A DNA stretch of 63,398 nt, the filler included, from Lenisia limosa (lineage: Eukaryota > Protista > Breviatea): NCBI GenBank assembly GCA_001655205.1. It is 10 parts of 10 records of this genome, joined end to end, with 100 filler letters (N's around TTAATTAATTAA, not from the genome) between each part and the next. Parts side by side here need not be neighbours in the genome. Positions count along the whole stretch, not along the records: positions 50,781 to 60,265 come from LPNZ01009390.1; 9 more parts are not named here. One strand, 5' to 3'. Every line of letters starts with the position of its first letter. The first letter of the stretch is position 1. Positions 50,288 to 60,455 of the stretch are shown here, one piece after another. The notes beneath the pieces were generated by a model. It worked only from the letters and a program-made list of their open reading frames with translations. It was not told the DNA's origin and searched no databases. Both the position numbers and the translations under genes were made by a program.

Positions 50288-50848
50288 TTTTGTTCCTTCC
50301 CTCGTTTCTTCCTATGTCTCCACTCGATCTCCACTCCGAACACTCCGAAGGCACCCACTCGCACAACCTGCCGTTATCCCAGAATAATAATAATCAATCA
50401 GNNNNNNNNNNNNNNNNNNNNNNNNNNNNNNNNNNNNNNNNNNNNNNNNNNNNNNNNNNNNNNNNNNNNNNNNNNNNNNNNNNNNNNNNNNNNNNNNNNN
50501 NNNNNNNNNNNNNNNNNNNNNNNNNNNNNNNNNTGGTTAATCCGGCCCGCTGGCGCTGCTACTTGCCGCCCAATTTCCAATTTTTTTTTTTTTTGAATTT
50601 GACATCACTAAACTTTCAATAATGGCATGGTGCTATGCAAATGTCTTATTAACTGCTCCTTTTTTTGCACCAAGTATTGCNNNNNNNNNNNNNNNNNNNN
50701 NNNNNNNNNNNNNNNNNNNNNNNNTTAATTAATTAANNNNNNNNNNNNNNNNNNNNNNNNNNNNNNNNNNNNNNNNNNNNGGGGGGGGGGATGGAGAAGG
50801 GCAAAAATGGTCGGTTTATTTCGTTTTTTGACTGAATAGGATCGATCT

Positions 50849-53800
50849 ATGTCTCTGAACATGTCGCCGTCACCACCACCCGCCTCTGTAGATCCCGCGA
50901 TATCCGAAGATTACCAGCAAGTTAGGGGGAATTTTCACGTACCGTTCACTCTCGAGGTTATTTTACATATGTTTGATGAGCCTATATCTTTATTACCATA
51001 TTATCAGCAAATGCATGCGTTCTATTGTCGATTCTGGGGTTTTTTTTTGTTCTATTTTTACCCCCCCCCCCCAGAAAACCGACCTGGAAGCCAGCATCCT
51101 AATTGATGAGGTGTCACGTGCAAAGGACGAACTGGACCGCGCCAAAATGGACGCCACGATGGCGCGCAAGGAGGCGGAGAACGCCCTCGTTATCGCACGC
51201 AACGCGCAAAATGAGCGTGACGAGCTGGCGCAAGCTTGGGCTATGTGAGGGGGGAGGGGGGGCATGCAACTTTGTGCACAGTTGTGTGGTAATTGATGAG
51301 TCATAAATGAAAATTGTAAAAGCATATCAAGCCGTATATCCAGGGCGTCCCTACGGTCCCAAAAATATACTGCACTCGATAAGTCCTCGATTAATGTCGA
51401 TATTTTGAGGATCTTTTTTGCACCGAAAGGAAGCCCCATATTCGGTTGCCTATGACCATGACATTTGCAGCCAAATTGGAACGTCGGCTGAAATGGCGTC
51501 ACTTCCTGATGAACAAAGAACCCAGGTTGTGATGGACGTAATTCAGGTGGAGGGGGGGGGGGGTNNNNNNNNNNNNNNNNNNNNNNNNNNNNNNNNNNNN
51601 NNNNNNNNNNNNNNNNNNNNNNNNNNNNNNNNNNNNNNNNNNNNNNNNNGCCCTCTCGTACCCCCGTGTATAATAATACTTCTTTCATAATGAGTATCTC
51701 TTCTCCATTTCCGTACTTTCCCCTTGTGTAACTGTGAGTCTTTATCAATATTCATCTTACTACTGAAGACCGCTGTGAGTGCCCACTCAGTTGGAATGCA
51801 GGCCGAAGCAAGCATTGAGGTTGGTTGGTTTTTTCTTGGTTTTTTCTTCCAAACTCTCGTGTCTTCTTTCTTCTCAAAATGTTGAGCTAATATTGCCTCT
51901 CTGTTTTTCTCATTTTCACCATAAATTTTCCAATTTTATTGTTTGAAGTAATTCGGTTCGTGATTAATATCTTTACGCCAAAATTCATTATCGAAATGTC
52001 CTTCATTTTCATCCCCTCTAGTCCGCCCCTAGTACATATTCCGCTGCCATCCAAGCTGTTGAAATTGTTCAGGTGATGGGGTTAGTTGAAAGGAGAATGC
52101 TATTTCATTTATCAACAATATTTTATAATAAGAGATAAGAGTGAATTGAACTTTTATGATATTATTTGCAACTTATTAGCTGGGTATTTTTTGATTGCAA
52201 TTTTGTTTTCTGAACACGCGTGTTTATTCGTACCCTCAGATTTCACTGATTATGTTGCCTTCTTGAACTAATTATTTTTCCTCAATAAAACGGATCTCTA
52301 ATACATGCCTTTATTAGTTTGATGTTTTATTATTGTTATTTTTATTATTGCTATTATTACTTTATTGTTTACATTTTAGCCTGCCCCAAGCACATACTCA
52401 ATCGGAATGCAAGCTGCCCAATCCCTTGAGGTTTGCGTTGGTCAAAGCTGAATGAGGATTATTGTGGGGTTAATGTTGGGCTTTACTTTGGCCAAAAACG
52501 GTAGTTCTCGATTAATCCTTAAATTTTATCGGTCGTTTCCGTAGGAGTGAAGCCTCTGTGTTACCATGCGATGTTGTCACTCTGTTTCACCCACCCCATC
52601 GGATGCGGTGCTGCAGAAGCGATTGGCCTGGGCTTTGTTTNNNNNNNNNNNNNNNNNNNNNNNNNNNNNNNNNNNNNNNNNNNNNNNNNNNNNNNNNNNN
52701 NNNNNNNNNNNNNNNNNNNNNNNNNNNNNNNNNNNNNNNNNNNNNNNNNNNTTCCTATTTTACTCACTAATCCCTTAGCCTGCTCCAAGCACGCACTCCT
52801 TTGGCATGCAAGCTGCTGAATCCCTGCAGGTATTCTAAATGTTCTGCCATTTCATGACGTGTGCATTCTATCATCCCTTTTTTAATATCTCTTAGCCTGC
52901 TGCAAGTACGTATTCTGTTGGAATGCAAGTTGCCCAATCCCTCCAGGTAATGACATGTTCACACAATCTTTATTTATTTTCGCATTAAAAAAAAACTCTA
53001 TTTTCTCTGACACTTTTATATGTTATTACATATTTTTCTGACAGTATAGCCTGCCCCGAGCACCCACTCTATTGGAATGCAAGCTGCTGAATCCATTCAG
53101 GTCTGCTAACATCTTGGATTGGAATGGTGATAGTTGATCCAGATCTCGAAAACAACTTTGATGATTTGATCTCTAGAGTATTGTCAATGAGAAGGATTAC
53201 TCATAGCATCCTGAGATAATAATGGGGTTTTGATTATTTTAAATTATATTACTTCAGAAAATGGGATTTGTCACAGTTTTCTTATCTATCGTTTATGACT
53301 TCTCTTCTCTACAAATTATGTCTCACAACAAAGCCTGCGGCAAGCACGCACTCCTTCGGAATGCAAGCCGCTGAATCCCTTGAGGTATGATGTACAATAA
53401 GAGTGATAGGAGTCATAGGACCGATAAGAGTGATAGGTGTGATTGTGGACATAGGAGTGATAGGAATCTATCATATGATATTGGTACAGTTTTGTATTTC
53501 TTTTTTTTATGAGTCTGTCACCCAGTGAAATATAACCTGACAACATCTTTGTTTCAGTTTCTGACCCCATAGCCTGCTGCAAGCACCTATTCTGTTGGAA
53601 TGCAAGTTGCCCAATCCCTCCAGGTATAATGACATGTTCACACAATCTTTTTTTTTCGCACATTTGTGATGAAGGCAGTTGTTCAAAGCTCTATTTTTTT
53701 CTGACACTTTTATATATATATTTACATTTTTTTCTGACATCATAGCCTGCCGTTAGCACCTATTCTGTTGGAATGCAAGCTGCTGAATCCCTTCAGGTAT

Positions 53801-56800
53801 GATGGAATGGCTTGGTATGAAACTTTTTGTCTCCCAAAATGACCCCTGGTGAACTACCAAATGATATATTCTACGCTATTTACTATACTATAAGTATAGC
53901 AGATCATAAAAATTTGATAATTTCTTTATAAACTCACAATATAGCCTTTCCCAAGTACCCACTCCATTGGCATGCAAGCTGCTGAATCCCTGCAAGTATG
54001 CCAATTAAGATTTTTTTTAAAATAGATTTCTGACAAATGCTACTTTTTTCAGATTGATTTTTTTTTGCTCTCAGGTACTTTTTGTTTCAGTAATAGAGTA
54101 AAAAGTACCTCTTTCTATTTCAAACAACATGGTGATGGTATTACTTTTATTTCCCTGTTTATAACCTCACAAATATAGCCTGTTCCTAGCACCCACTCGA
54201 TTGGAATGCAAGCATCGCAGTCCTTCCAGGTATGCTTAGATAATTAAGTCGAAATTTCGGATTTTTCGGAATTCTTGAGGTCTAGTCGGAATCTGGTCTG
54301 GTCCTACTTACACCCTTTTATAAAATGGACAGTATTTTATAGATTTGAGTGAAAGATTATTGGGTAATTTCGGCCTGATCTTGTTTTATATCTCATTTCT
54401 TCAAACATTAGCATTAAAAAACTCATGATGAGTGATGGATCTCTTTTCTGAATATCATCTTCTACTTATAATCTATCACAGTTCTTGTGGAAAGTAGTGC
54501 TTCATTCTAAGAGTAGTTCTAACATTATAGCCTGCCCCAAGCACTTACTCTGTTGGCATGCAAGCGGCTCAATCCTTACAGGTAATCAGCCTAGGGTCGG
54601 GTCTTTATGATCTTAGTTTCAAGAGACTTTACACAAATATATTCTATTTTGCTGTTTTGTTTTTGTTTTGCTTCCTAATTGTTCCATTTTCATGTACGCT
54701 GAAGTGATGGGATTTGGGTCAGAAGCTACTGGCCTGGGCTTTGTTTNNNNNNNNNNNNNNNNNNNNNNNNNNNNNNNNNNTAATAAATTTTCCAACTTTA
54801 CCCCCCCCCCCCAGACTACCCGGAGCCTACAAGGAGCGATTTCCAGGATCTCATGGGCTGAAAGCGGACAAACTTCCACCCCTCGGTCCGGGCAAACCTC
54901 CGTGCTGGACTCATCTGTTGACTCTGTTGGGGGGGGGGGGNNNNNNNNNNNNNNNNNNNNNNNNNNNNNNNNNNNNNNNNNNNNNNNNNNNNNNNNNNNN
55001 NNNNNNNNNATGAAGAATGTTGGCGTAAAAGTCCTTATCACGAACCAAAAAATCTGAAACTTCAAACAAACAAAAAACGAGCAATAGCAAACACTGGCAA
55101 CCAAAGCTAAACCTTGGCAAGAACCAGGATACAGGTGTGGTGTGGGGGTAAAAGGCCAGTGTGTATGCGTTGGAGTGTAATAGAGGTGTCAGGTGTATGC
55201 GTATATGCGGTTGTGGGTATTATGAGGAAAGGGTTTGATAATGATTATTAAAGAGGTCATATAGTTTGTAGCAATTTTACTCCCTCTTAACGCTTTCTTT
55301 AGGCTCTGTTTCACCCCCCCCTCCTTTAACGCTTTCTTTAGGCTCTTTGTGCGGCCGCTTCTGATGCACAAAATGACGTTTTAGCTGAGGTGAGGTTCTA
55401 TAGAGTTGATTTTGAGTCTTTATCTTTCCGCTGCTCCGTCCCCTCTTCTTTTTTATCAGCCTTCCATTTATACCCCAGTGATTTTCCTCCCCCCCCCCNN
55501 NNNNNNNNNNNNNNNNNNNNNNNNNNNNNNNNNNNNNNNNNNNNNNNNNNNNNNNNNNNNNNNNNNNNNNNNNNNNNNNNNNNNNNNNNNNNNNNNNTTA
55601 TCATTTTTCTATCTCCAGGCCACCACAGCTTTCGACTTACTAGACTCATTCACCCCCTACTTGATTCCCTCTAAATCTCCTCCTGGAGTTTAAGCACAGC
55701 AAGGTCGTACTAACCTCAAAATTGTCACCTCACGGTGCTGGACTTCCCCGAGGAGTTTTGTTTTGTTTGACGGCCATTCTAACAGACCTGACTCAAGCTA
55801 AGATTTTCGTAACGTGTACATATCATGTCTTCGACCCTCAATTGGGCCAAACCAGGGAAAGCAAAGACCGTCTGGAGCAGATATACACTGTACTTTTAGC
55901 GTATGATACCTTTTATGACCGTCATAAAACACTTGCTGGTGTGAATCACCCATATAAATGCCAGACCGTTATAGAACATTTGTTGGTATGCATCACCCAA
56001 AAAAGCCAGGGAGGCTGGAGGTTTTGATGGTCTGCAAATTTGGAAGACTTTCCCGTCAATAAAACCAACAATAGTATCAAATACAGCACCCTTTGTTTTA
56101 ATTGCTGTGTTTGAGCTGCCTGTTGAAAGAGGTGTCAAGGCCTTATAACATACCAGAGCGATCGCGTGAACAAACAAGGGAAAGGTGAGAATAGAGGAAA
56201 TAAGACCGGCACGGAAAAGGGATTCCGCCACGATCGAATCTTGGAACCCGAAGATTCTTATCCACAATCTCTTTGTGTCGCCGTTCGTCATCCTTGGACT
56301 TTTCGAGAAATTGCTTATACCAGCTGTGAAGCAGCCAGGTCCACAGCTGACGTGTAATCCTGCAAGTCGAGAGGCTTTTTGAGCTCTCCAACCGACATGG
56401 GATCAGAACTAGCCGTTTCTTTGTCTTCAGCCGAAGCGTCTAACTCAGCTTCCATGTGGGAAGGGCATAAGAGATGACCTGAAGTCTGAACTTTTCCAGG
56501 GTCCACGGAAGGAGGTGTTGTTTTCACCGTCTGATCCTTGTGCGTCTTTATCTCATCGAGGATGAACACCCTCGCCTCGCCCACCGCCAACAGCTTCATT
56601 GAGGGAATCATCATGATTTTTTTTATTTTGTATTAAAGAAGAAGGGGAAACGAACAATACAAAAGACTTCTCAGTACTAAGAAGATGATTACGAAGGTTG
56701 ATATAAGGTTTATCAATGTTGTAGGGGAAGACATGAACTCCATATTGAACATAGTAAGAGCACGTATGAGACATTTTTTGAAAACATTTTCATTGCATTT

Positions 56801-59800
56801 TGTAATAACATACAAGGATTAGAGCTGGATTTGAAAGACGGATGCGTCCAACAAGGGTACCTGCTTGCAGATATTTCCTGCATGTCCGCATCTAACTTGG
56901 ATAAAATGCAGGGACCTAATGTTTGTCATCTGTTAGACAATAAAATGTTCCTTTTTTTTCAATAGATAATATATAAAATCATAGTCAAATATTGAGGACT
57001 TGGGAGTTACCTCTATGTATCCGCTGTACCTGTCTAAACCTGGTGGTCTATCTAAATATCCATATTATCCCATTAACTCTCTCTTTTTTGTTTCAAAATT
57101 TCTGTTGGGAGTTTCAAATTATTCGGTTTGTTATTTTTACATTTACGCAATATTCTTCATCGAAATGTCTTTCGTTTTACTTTGATTTGGCTTCTTTTTT
57201 TTGTTTCATAAATTTCCAATTTTAACCCCCCAGCTGCAGTCTGTATTGGAGTCAGCAGAGCGACAAAGGGACGCTGTCCAGGCTGAAATTGCCGTTATTA
57301 ACGCTCAAAAAGACGAGGTCGGTGTTGTAGATTTTGTCTATCATTTCGGTATTATTTATTTCGTCAATCTCATTGTAATACTTCAGTTTTTTATCTAACA
57401 TATCGTTATATTGGAAAACAGCTTTCTAACAATTTTTCTTCACAGCTAACCGTTTGTTTTGTGTTTTTTTCGTTTCCATTTTCTTTCACCCCCCTCTCTC
57501 CCACAGATACTAGTCTCGTTAGAGTCTCTGAACGAACAGCTTGAGAAGGAAACTGCCAGGGTTAACAGCAAAAGTTTGCATGTCTAGTCTTGACTTCGTG
57601 CCGCTCTGTACCATCATCACTGGTTTTTGTCTAGTTTTAGCGTTGGTTGCTCCTGTCTGTTATTGTTTTGTTTTGTTTTCAAAAACATAATTTAACCCGT
57701 GACGGGATGCGGTGCCGCGGCCTGGGCTTTGTTTGTTGGAGTGACGGGATGCAGTGCCGCGGCCTGGACTTTGTTTGTTTTGTTGTGTATCCCTGGTGTA
57801 TTGTCAGCCAACAGAGTTGATTTTTTTTGTTTTTTTTTTGTTTCATAAATTTTACACCCCCCCCCCCCNNNNNNNNNNNNNNNNNNNNNNNNNNNNNNNN
57901 NNNNNNNNNNNNNNNNNNNNNNNNNNNNNNNNNNNNNNNNNNNNAGGCCCAGGCGGACGAGGAGTGTCACAAACTAGACGAAGAATTGGATAACCTTCGG
58001 AAGCGAAATGAACTGAACTGCAGCGAGGCTGAAGAAAGGTTCCGACAGCTTGTTGAGGAGGAGGAGAAGAAATTGGAAGAGAAGACTCGTGAAGTCTCTG
58101 ATGTGAGTTTGGAAATAAGGCATATTTCTTGGTAAATCCACAATAATGGGCAAAAAAATCTGAAGTGGTGGCATAATACAATTTTTGATATAATATACTA
58201 TATGATATGCTATAATACATTTTATTTCTGAAACAGATTAAATGTAAATCGTAATAATGTGCCCTTATTCAACCCAACAGATCTTTTAAAGTAATGCTAT
58301 AGGTTGGCGCTGACTTGACGAATATGCGAATTGAGCAAGCTGCTACACAAGCACGATTGGAGGAGGTGAGGGGGGGGATAGTTGGAGGAGTTATTCTCTT
58401 CCTTAATAATACGCAGTTCTACTTCTTGTCATTTTCTCAAAACTGCATTTATCAAAAAAGATAAACATGCCAAAATAATCGATTTTGCAGTCCAAGCAAA
58501 CACTCGCCAATCTGCGAAACGAACACCAAGCAACCCAACAAGTCCTTAATGACCTTCGTGAGAGCATCAAATCGGTGGGGGGGGGGGGNNNNNNNNNNNN
58601 NNNNNNNNNNNNNNNNNNNNNNNNNNNNNNNNNNNNNNNNNNNNNNNNNNNNNNNNNNNNNNNNNNNNNNNNNNNNNNNNNNNNNNNNNNNNNNNNNNNN
58701 NNNNNNNNNNNNNNNNNTTTAAAAAAAGCTATTGGTTAATTATGACAATGTTAAACGTGTTGCAGTCCTTCGTTTAATCCCTCGTGTGTTTCTTACCAAC
58801 AGATTGACTTTGGGCTTTCTTTTTGTTTCATAAATTTTCCAATTTTACTCCCCAGGCGGGTCACACTCTTGAAGACATTTCCGACTCTGTTTTGGAGTCC
58901 CAGTCCGCAGAACGGGATTCTAGAACATTCGTTGCCGACGCCGAAAGGCTGCTTTCCGACCTTTTGGCGCGAAAAGACGCCATTATCGAATCCGTGCGCG
59001 CGGAGGATGAGAAGAGACAAATCGTGGGGGGGGGGGGGNNNNNNNNNNNNNNNNNNNNNNNNNNNNNNNNNNNNNNNNNNNNNNNNNNNNNNNNNNNNNN
59101 NNNNNNNNNNNNNNNNNNNNNNNNNNNNNATACTCATCTTTGAACAACAAGAATAATTCGAAGGTATAGAAATACAGTTTAATAAGAAAGAGAGCCTGTA
59201 ATATGCAAAATACCTCTACATTAGGCTTCACTTCGGTCTCCAAAGATCAGTAGATTATCGATATTTTCTAGGAGATCTGGAGGCATTCGTTCGTTTTTTT
59301 TTTGCACCGAAGTGAATCACAAAAGTTTTTGCATCATATTATATCATTGAGGCTTCCCTACGGTCCCAAAAAAGACTGAATTTCTCGATAAATCTTCAAT
59401 AAATATTGATATTTTATGTCTTTTTCGGAGTGTAGGTAAGCCCTACATATCAGATAGTATATATTCTTTGAAGATAGAACATTTCTTGGTTCTTACAGTC
59501 AAGGCTGCTGCTGAGACTGTCTCTATCCAAAAGTCCAATGAAGCCCTTTTGGCAACTGGCCGCGAAACAGACCTCAGAAATGCCGCGCTTTTAAGGGATG
59601 AAGAGGCTCTGCGAGCGCAAGAGACGATGCTCAGACGGNNNNNNNNNNNNNNNNNNNNNNNNNNNNNNNNNNNNNNNNNNNNNNNNNNNNNNNNNNNNNN
59701 NNNNNNNNNNNNNNNNNNNNNNNNNNNNNNNNNNNNNNNNNNNNNNNNNNNNNNNNNNNNNNNNNNNNNNNNNNNNNNNNNNNNNNNNNNNNNNNNNNNN

Positions 59801-60229
59801 NNNNNNNNNNNNNNNNNGAAGAATTAACATGCATGACCCATTTCAAATTTCAAACTATCCACAAAGGTGCCACTTTATTAATGCCAATAAATAGTTCATA
59901 ACCAATGTTACAAAGCTCTTTTGAATTTCTACTTACTAAGAGCATATATGTGTGATATATCATATTATAATATCTCTCATAAGATGGTGTGAACATGTAT
60001 TTCTCATCTCTGCCTATAACCAATTTTTAATGCTAAAGTTGTAATGAATATCTCCAACCCATAGCCATCCAAGCACATAACCCCAGTTGAAGCTCTAATG
60101 ATACATCCTACAACGCATAACCATCTTAACTAAAGCTCAAATGGATAAACCCATAACCATCCCAGCTGAAACTTGCGAAGGAGGAGGCTAAGCTCGACAT
60201 TTCCTCTCTGGAAGATGCTGTGGTCAAGG
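50849..60229 (+). CDS. Large coiled-coil protein with a central array of 17-aa SxGMQ repeats; continuity across 55-57 kb unproven
   Basis: MSLNMSPSPPP.., coiled-coil exon 51075-51244, twelve 51-nt repeat exons at 51769-54581, then heptad-rich exons at 57234, 57507, 57946, 58303, 58491, 58856, ~59500 and ~60167-60229. Confidence 0.65.
51769..54581 (+). repeat. Array of 12 identical-length (51 nt) phase-0 exons
   Basis: Exons start at 51769, 52022, 52380, 52779, 52896, 53050, 53334, 53573, 53746, 53945, 54179 and 54531. Each is preceded by AG, followed by GT, and encodes approximately PAPST(Y/H)S(V/I)GMQAA(E/Q)SLQ. Confidence 0.92.
51941..52021 (+). mobile_element. Degenerate family A copy at the acceptor of the second 51-nt exon
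   Basis: TAATTCGGTTCGTGATTAATATCTTTACGCCAAAATTCATTATCGAAATGTCCTTCATTTTCATCCCCTCTAG, then the exon. Confidence 0.65.
55010..55095 (-). mobile_element. Family A copy antisense to its host gene
   Basis: The minus strand reads GTGTTTGCTATTGCTCG..GAAGTTTCAGA..GTTCGTGATAAGGACTTTTACGCCAACATTCTTCA, then an N gap and a C-run. Confidence 0.7.
55700..56291 (-). pseudogene. Decayed PIF/Harbinger transposase (DDE_Tnp_4/HARBI1-like nuclease)
   Basis: AIKTKGAVFDTIVGFIDGKVFQICRPSK, then after a frameshift QQVFYDGHKRYHTLKVQCISAPDGLCFPWFGPIEGRRHDMYTLRKS*. This matches the Harbinger consensus GFIDG..ICRP..YNGHKR.HALK.Q....PDG....GP.EGRRHD. In-frame TAG present. Confidence 0.85.
57105..57233 (+). mobile_element. 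Composite of family A core plus family B 3' end, at an acceptor
   Basis: GGGAGTTTCAAATTATTCGG..ATATTCTTCATCGAAATGTCTTTCGTTTTAC followed by TTTGTTTCATAAATTTCCAATTTTAACCCCCCAG, then the exon at 57234. Confidence 0.7.
57699..57868 (+). mobile_element. Repeat family B, longest visible copy, ending in a C-run
   Basis: GTGACGGGATGCGGTGCCGCGGCCTGGGCTTTGTTT (tandem x2), then GTCAGCCAACAGAGTTGATTTT..GTTTCATAAATTTTACACCCC. Related pieces at 52600-52640, 54709-54814, 58795-58855, 47140-47178, 30631-30695(-) and 60367-60420(-). Confidence 0.7.
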
Positions 60230-60455
60230 TTGGGGGGAGAAAAAAGAGGGGGGGGGCTTCACTTCNNNNNNNNNNNNNNNNNNNNNNNNNNNNNNNNNNN
60301 NNNNNNNNNTTAATTAATTAANNNNNNNNNNNNNNNNNNNNNNNNNNNNNNNNNNNNNNNNNNNNACAAAAAAAAGCCCAAAATCAACTCTGTTGGCTGA
60401 CAACACACAAGGGTTGAGAACAACAAAACTGTTGACAATTACCCCTTAGTCTCAC

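Follow-up and report, generated by a model that had tools for sequence, protein, structure and literature searches.

A tandem array of twelve 51-nt exons, each encoding one 17-residue module, in a predicted coiled-coil gene of Lenisia limosa

Fibrillar collagen genes contain uniform 54-bp exons. These exons consist of whole codons, encode integral peptide repeats, and derive from a duplicated ancestral exon. The PEVK region of titin is encoded by short exons with one PPAK or poly-E motif each. Its exons were duplicated in tandem, and isoform length is set via exon skipping (PMC6469411, PMC3575840). Here we describe an exon array in the breviate protist Lenisia limosa (assembly GCA_001655205.1). 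The window is a joined stretch of 63,398 nt, filler included, and the region analyzed is the piece at 50781-60265 (LPNZ01009390.1), which contains one plus-strand gene with many short exons. Like the 54-bp collagen exons, the array exons are uniform, have whole-codon ends, and appear to derive from duplication. Like the titin PEVK exons, they are many and short, encode one repeated peptide each in a large structural protein, and could be removed without loss of frame. The third comparison is with multivalent clients of the dimeric protein LC8 (DYNLL), such as ASCIZ/ATMIN, GKAP/DLGAP1, and Nup159, which also carry several Q-centered motifs in a row near dimerizing segments.

The exon array and its peptide module

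As read from the sequence, the array contains 12 units of exactly 51 nt each within 51769-54581 on the plus strand.

R1, 51769-51819, plus strand: array exon, divergent; peptide TAVSAHSVGMQAEASIE
R2, 52022-52072, plus strand: array exon, the most divergent unit; peptide SAPSTYSAAIQAVEIVQ
R3, 52380-52430, plus strand: array exon
R4, 52779-52829, plus strand: array exon, outside the coverage of DNA-run contigs
R5, 52896-52946, plus strand: array exon; peptide identical to that of R8
R6, 53050-53100, plus strand: array exon
R7, 53334-53384, plus strand: array exon; acceptor AAG
R8, 53573-53623, plus strand: array exon, 96% identical to R5
R9, 53746-53796, plus strand: array exon
R10, 53945-53995, plus strand: array exon; A is the final base ahead of the donor
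R11, 54179-54229, plus strand: array exon
R12, 54531-54581, plus strand: array exon

All 12 units are preceded by AG and followed by GT, and frame 0 is free of stops in every one. Every unit has phase 0-0, and the flanking exons carry the frame on without a break. Joining three upstream exons (E1-E3), R1-R12, and five downstream exons (P1-P5) gives an uninterrupted open reading frame of 466 codons, which continues via P6-P8. An earlier note on this DNA had reported 12 phase 0-0 exons of 51 nt; all are present where it placed them, and its translations agree with ours. It had also held that any exon could be left out without a frameshift. This is correct: with units of 51 nt and phase 0-0 throughout, the frame survives the loss of any subset.

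The units stand well apart from the rest of the sequence. A degenerate pattern for the last 14 unit codons matched 10 times in the window, where shuffles predict 0.00 matches. A weight-matrix scan of the whole piece on both strands returned the 12 units only; they score 24-75, and the next best site scores -8. R1-R12 are related exons of equal length, each equal to one whole repeat, as in tandem exon duplication. Nucleotide identity is 69-96% among R3-R12, and R1 and R2 are far more divergent (51-69%). Judged by its sequence, this is a genuine protein-coding array that arose by tandem duplication of an exon-plus-intron cassette in a long coiled-coil gene.

The unit consensus has 17 residues: P-A-P-S-T-[Y/H]-S-[V/I/F]-G-M-Q-A-A-[E/Q]-S-L-Q. 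S4, S7, and Q11 are invariant in all 12 units, and T5, G9, M10, and S15 are kept in 11 of the 12. The invariant glutamine of the earlier note is therefore confirmed as Q11, with S4 and S7 likewise invariant. The array amounts to 204 residues. It contains no K or R and ten E, with 18% S, 18% A, 13% Q, and 8% P. P-x-P is found at every module boundary.

Among R3-R12, mean pairwise differences are 0.53 per synonymous site (pS) and 0.12 per nonsynonymous site (pN), a ratio of 0.22. Minority letters at codon positions 1, 2, and 3 number 27, 5, and 43. Mean exon identity is 78% (0.78); in the introns, similarity falls to that of the shuffled control beyond about 40 nt from the exons. GC content is 0.54 in array exons versus 0.32 in the introns, and the exon value is like that of the flanking exons. 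Because pN/pS is low, synonymous divergence is high, and the introns have diverged to the shuffled level, the units are evidently old duplicates, each under purifying selection as coding sequence, and not a recently homogenized repeat. Seven positions are kept in at least 11 of the 12 units. This argues for a specific motif, recognized or structured, over a mere spacer in which composition alone would count.

The introns had been called unrelated. This holds beyond about 40 nt, where they equal shuffles, and fails close to the exons. The approximately 40 nt of intron adjoining each exon are slightly alike among units, and a CTNAC-like branch site lies 8-20 nt ahead of the acceptor in all of them. 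Between R5-R6 and R8-R9, the exons are 96% identical, the start of the downstream intron 84%, and the upstream intron 81%. On this likeness, the two pairs are a recent two-unit duplication. Since the intron flanks are alike as well, the duplication unit includes the intron, and the array has grown recently.

The number of units in the assembly is credible. Word depth in the DNA run is 26-42 over the array versus 22-26 in the unique flanks; the array is therefore neither a collapsed repeat nor an inflated one. Over 50781-56500, the DNA-run contigs confirm the sequence, the single-copy depth, and two gap sizes. The run holds 92% of the array region. It has no contig depth at 52691-52881, a stretch that includes R4, and this part of the scaffold therefore stems from other data.

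The earlier note had allowed for more exons hidden in two gaps. One assembly gap lies inside the array.

52641-52751: assembly gap within the R3-R4 intron

On its left, this gap abuts a dispersed repeat at the end marked by GGCCTGGGCTTTGTTT; word depth there is ~65,500, and that of unique sequence is ~25-35. On its right, the flank opens with TTCCTATTTTAC, which matches the element's other end. Where the element is complete, at 57741-57868, ~72 nt separate the GGCCTGGGCTTTGTTT and TTCCTATTTTAC points. The gap most likely holds the interior of the intron repeat and not an exon. The gap at 54747-54780 has the same two flanks, and a third gap, at 51565-51649, is closed by a DNA-run contig with 47 nt (estimated size, 85). 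Hidden array exons thus seem unlikely, because the gap flanks match the two ends of one intron repeat and a contig closes the third gap. The frame is in any case independent of the 52641-52751 gap, since R3 and R4 are self-contained and phase 0-0. The gap at 55499-55597, downstream of the array, is closed by a DNA-run contig with 73 nt (estimated size, 99).

The remaining exons of the gene model, as read from the sequence, are as follows.

E1, 50849-50920, plus strand: exon with an ATG four codons past an in-frame stop
E2, 51075-51244, plus strand: upstream helical, heptad-patterned segment
E3, 51471-51546, plus strand: 25-residue linker ahead of the array; joins E2 to R1 in frame
P1, 54815-54925, plus strand: 37-residue S/T-rich linker past the array; the frame continues
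P2, 55342-55389, plus strand: exon
P3, 57234-57317, plus strand: exon
P4, 57507-57573, plus strand: exon
P5, 57945-58102, plus strand: downstream helical segment; acceptor inside the preceding gap
P6, 58303-58365, plus strand: exon
P7, 58491-58574, plus strand: exon
P8, 58856-59023, plus strand: exon, in frame with P5-P7; seen in the polyA RNA run, unlike the rest of the gene
P9, 59499-59638, plus strand: probable exon; runs into a gap; frame not directly continuous with P8
P10, 60166-60228, plus strand: probable exon

The array is flanked by helices that look like coiled-coil rods. AlphaFold2 predicts E2 as a single helix over residues 2-55 (predicted local distance difference test score [pLDDT], 95.6) and P5 as a single helix over residues 2-51 (pLDDT, 97.5). 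The heptad a/d contrast is 0.71 in E2 versus 0.29 +/- 0.07 in shuffles, and it is 0.43 in P2-P5 versus 0.28 +/- 0.04. E2 and P2-P5 contain no P or G. E2 also resembles the Pfam family Alanine_zipper (expect value [E], 1.6e-4), just short of the cutoff. A position between coiled-coil regions, as first described for the array, is therefore supported at the level of prediction. An acceptor-like site at 50839/50840 precedes E1, and the gene start could be further upstream. P8 ends in phase 0, and P9 would enter its coiled-coil-like frame only with one base brought over from the preceding exon (59024-59498). Either a small exon would be hidden in the gap at 59039-59129 or the G-run would be mis-sized.

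Possible function of the array

A multivalent run of one conserved peptide module between coiled-coil rods, with the partner unnamed, has in our judgment a little better than an even chance of being the right description. The proposal starts from the exon structure, the reading frame, the selection on the peptide, the helical flanks, and the single-copy depth. A cassette of one 51-nt phase-0 exon and its intron was duplicated repeatedly in tandem inside a coiled-coil gene, with each exon supplying one 17-residue module. The rods, we infer, would pair two or more chains through their helices. Every chain would then display a single short linear motif 12 times over in a row. The array may serve as a multivalent docking platform that binds many copies of a partner, or it may self-associate. 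The number of motif copies can be altered by genomic duplication, as in R5-R6/R8-R9, and in principle by frame-neutral exon skipping, if splicing varies.

Several points weigh against this proposal. The contigs of the polyA RNA run X2 on 50781-56500 match the dispersed repeat only, and none lies on the array exons. No homologue or known domain was found for the gene in protein collections, by Pfam on the flanking exons, or in the ESM Atlas. No DNA-run contig bridges 52641-52751, and the physical join of R3 and R4 rests on the scaffold. The array itself could be a disordered motif, a helix-linker, or a beta-rich repeat. The lack of an RNA contig carries little weight, because X2 is a single, small run whose contigs total 46 Mb, and contigs built from short words break within repeats.

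The same RNA result would be explained if the units lay outside the mature mRNA, as unexpressed or decaying pseudo-exons or in a wrongly joined scaffold. The DNA run is also without coverage at 52752-52881, and one junction is an unbridged gap. We hold this to be the least probable of the alternatives. Pseudo-exons would not be expected to have a pN/pS of 0.22, all 24 of 24 splice dinucleotides intact, and branch-site-like motifs kept, and the frame runs unbroken into both flanking exons. The size of the RNA run and the breaking of its contigs tell against this explanation too. The array could instead be a physical element, that is, a disordered, uncharged, extensible or self-associating low-complexity segment in which length and composition matter, such as a PEVK-type spring or an S/Y/G/Q-type cohesive region. 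The high S, A, Q, and P contents, the lack of K and R, and the P-x-P boundaries fit such a segment, and in titin one-motif-per-exon arrays do set spring length (PMC6469411). We consider it unlikely, given that S4, S7, and Q11 (12 of 12 units) and T5, G9, M10, and S15 (11 of 12) are strictly conserved despite near-saturated synonymous divergence. Rather improbable is a regular folded repeat, such as a solenoid of 17-residue units built as strand-turn-strand or short-helix-turn, that would extend the rod with no docking. The exact period, the possible turn markers G9, P1, and P3, and the alternation of polar and hydrophobic residues in T-Y-S-V-G-M-Q-A are consistent with a fold of this type. The units match no repeat family in Pfam or the protein collections, however, and the strong divergence of R1 and R2 would be unusual inside a packed solenoid.

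The earlier note had gone further and named LC8/DYNLL as the partner. The units were compared with 79 validated LC8-binding 8-mers and 32 anchor-containing nonbinders from Jespersen et al. 2019 (PMC6607443, Table S4). With Q11 set as position 0, they read [Y/H]-S-[V/I/F]-G-M-Q-A-A. Position 0 is Q in 12 of 12 units and in 74 of the 79 binders. The flank ahead of the anchor is favorable: S at -4, V/I/F at -3, and G at -2 occur in 20, 18, and 19 of the 79 binders, and the LC8 rules ask for a polar residue at -4, one at least the size of Val at -3, and no bulky aromatic at -2 (PMC6607443). The anchor itself differs. Position -1 is M in 11 units and I in one, and M occurs there in none of the 79 binders (T in 62, I in 7, V in 6, and S in 4). 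Position +1 is A in 10 units and V in two, and no binder has A there (T in 70, V in 5, C in 2, and I in 2). Position +2 is A in 9 of 12 units and in only 2 of 79 binders, where P, D, or E is preferred. By the rules, -1 should be T, V, I, or S, mid-sized residues that form hydrogen bonds or are beta-branched; a hydrophobic residue is poorly accepted at +2, and deviation from the anchor gives nonbinders (PMC6607443). Just one peptide in the lists, IQKMLQTD of PLK1, has a long unbranched hydrophobic residue (L) at -1, and it is a nonbinder. No MQA, MQV, or MQT anchor is present in the supplementary lists of PMC6607443. The combination M-Q-A is absent among the 79 binders, and the units therefore lack the defining feature of the LC8 anchor.

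If each unit were nonetheless a G-[I/V]-Q-V class LC8/DYNLL site, up to 12 LC8 dimers would zip two chains together, and exon skipping would set the valence. The invariant Q and the frequent residues at -4 to -2 fit this idea, as do the phase 0-0 exons. The regular 17-residue spacing by coiled coils recalls multivalent LC8 clients as they are generally known. R5 and R8 (YSVGMQVA) share 5 of 8 residues with QSVGVQVE, which with LSIGIQVD is an LC8 site of GKAP/DLGAP1 (PMC6607443). The mismatches at -1, +1, and +2, the nonbinding L-1 peptide, and the missing anchors make LC8 binding very improbable in our view. In addition, the MQAAESLQ half of the unit consists of helix-favoring residues, whereas LC8 sites bind as beta-strands. 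The LC8-type identity is thus at odds with the validated sites, even though positions 0 and -4 to -2 agree. What stands of the proposed docking array is a multivalent array of Q-containing peptides between helical heptad segments; what falls, on the anchor mismatch, is LC8 as its partner. A splice-tunable docking platform for a dimeric hub with a novel anchor, [V/I/F]-G-M-Q-A, would represent either a new and divergent LC8 site class of this lineage or a docking site for a hub not yet described, and we regard it as a long shot. If it were true, the number of bound hubs, and hence the stiffness or pairing of the coiled coil, would be set by how many of the 12 exons are included.

Searches for relatives and elements of the introns

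Of the exons, P8 was the one represented in the RNA, with 0.64 of its sampled words in run X2. An exhaustive HMMER search with P8 against 1.84 billion representative proteins gave two weak matches (E, 2.4e-5 and 7.7e-4). Both were unrelated coiled-coil repeat proteins and were judged to be chance. The ESM Atlas search on P8 returned bacterial hypothetical and TIR clusters, with scores of <=0.90, and was uninformative. A word-indexed search of a 5.8-billion-cluster collection with three consecutive units, R4-R6, was designed to pick up paralogues or pieces of spliced transcripts 28-89 residues long; it found nothing. A DNA pattern covering the degenerate codons of T-[Y/H]-S-x-G-M-Q-[A/V]-A-[E/Q]-S had one match in the metagenome contigs of the Joint Genome Institute (JGI). 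It was bacterial, intergenic, and not in a repeat, and it was judged to be chance. Pfam found no domain above the cutoff in the flanking exons, and Rfam found nothing significant in the piece 50781-60265. The literature was searched for arrays of 51-bp exons or repeats of 17 residues, with no match.

Most introns outside the array have a distinctive form. In 12 of 13 inspected, GT and a run of 5-13 G stand at the start or a C-run or C-rich tract and AG at the end. None of the 11 introns within the array starts with GT and a G-run or ends with a C-run or C-rich tract and AG. The nonarray introns or intron ends of this form are at the following positions.

50921-51074
51245-51262
51547-51564
54781-54814
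54926-54940
57203-57233
57840-57868
58366-58378
58575-58588
58825-58855
59024-59038
60229-60255

Several nonarray introns have TTTGTTTCATAAATTTTCCAATTTTA in common at their 3' ends, with the C-run and then AG after it. Seven assembly gaps out of the nine in the piece adjoin these homopolymers or a high-copy repeat module. This ~40-nt module (GGATGCGGTGC..GGCCTGGGCTTTGTTTG) occurs at 52601-52640, 54706-54746, and 57699-57779, and it is tandemly doubled at the last site. In the DNA run it has a word depth of ~65,500, where unique sequence has ~25-35, and this suggests some 2,000 copies or more in the genome. Contigs from polyA RNA contain the module as well.

A second, neighboring module of the intron element that carries TTTGTTTCATAAATTTTCCAATTTTA (..AATTCGGTT..TACGCC/AAT..TTCATCGAAATGTC..) is forward at 57113-57178 and 51941-52009 and reversed at 55010-55077. 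The forward copies lie ~60 nt upstream of a C-run. The reverse copy lies just past the gap that follows a GT and G-run donor. Because the module is reversed just inside an intron of this kind, we suggest that one element may supply 3' splice sites in its forward orientation and 5' splice sites in the reverse one, and that it may be introner-like and bidirectional. Bidirectional introner-like elements have been described in dinoflagellates and Aureococcus (bioRxiv 10.1101/2020.10.14.339549), and the element here is like them in having apparent splice sites in both orientations. The homopolymer-ridden, pyrimidine-rich, repeat-filled introns also recall the description of the Physarum genome (PMC4758236), as a resemblance only.

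Two further features were seen in introns. The 1.8-kb P2-P3 intron contains a decayed remnant of a Harbinger/PIF-type transposase (55798-56291, minus strand). It matches DDE_Tnp_4 (E, 2.9e-5) just under the Pfam cutoff, is broken by stops, and has a partly duplicated segment. The R7-R8 intron has a 9-nt tandem repeat of ATAGGAGTG at 53397-53465, with 7.7 copies and 66% matches.

Comparison with known systems

The locus is an unusually clean natural case of one motif per exon. Its peptide has been kept while synonymous sites and introns diverged almost to randomness, and this identifies the 17-residue module as functional, though it resembles nothing in the databases. If a partner is found, the array would be a ready-made system for studying how a coiled-coil scaffold's assembly depends on the number of motifs, as set through duplication or splicing. 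The outcome is an orphan added to a known architectural class, with the specific LC8 claim removed.

The N-terminal half of the motif, S-[V/I]-G-x-Q, is like the GKAP sites. The anchor M-Q-A is unlike those of LC8 clients, as none of the 79 validated sites has it, and +2 is A and not D, E, or P. To our knowledge, the motifs of known LC8 clients are not arranged one per exon. The architecture of the array is of a known kind: one exon per repeat, tandem duplication, and symmetric phases. The exact unit length and the seven strictly kept positions are particular to it. Collagen exons encode Gly-X-Y triplets that form a triple helix; the array has no Gly-X-Y periodicity, and its 51 nt encode one complex motif of 17 residues. 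Titin PEVK motifs are ~28 residues long, variable in length, and highly charged (P, E, V, and K). The array units have a fixed length of 17 residues, bear no charge or are slightly acidic, and are far more strictly conserved. The host differs from titin in being a coiled-coil protein.

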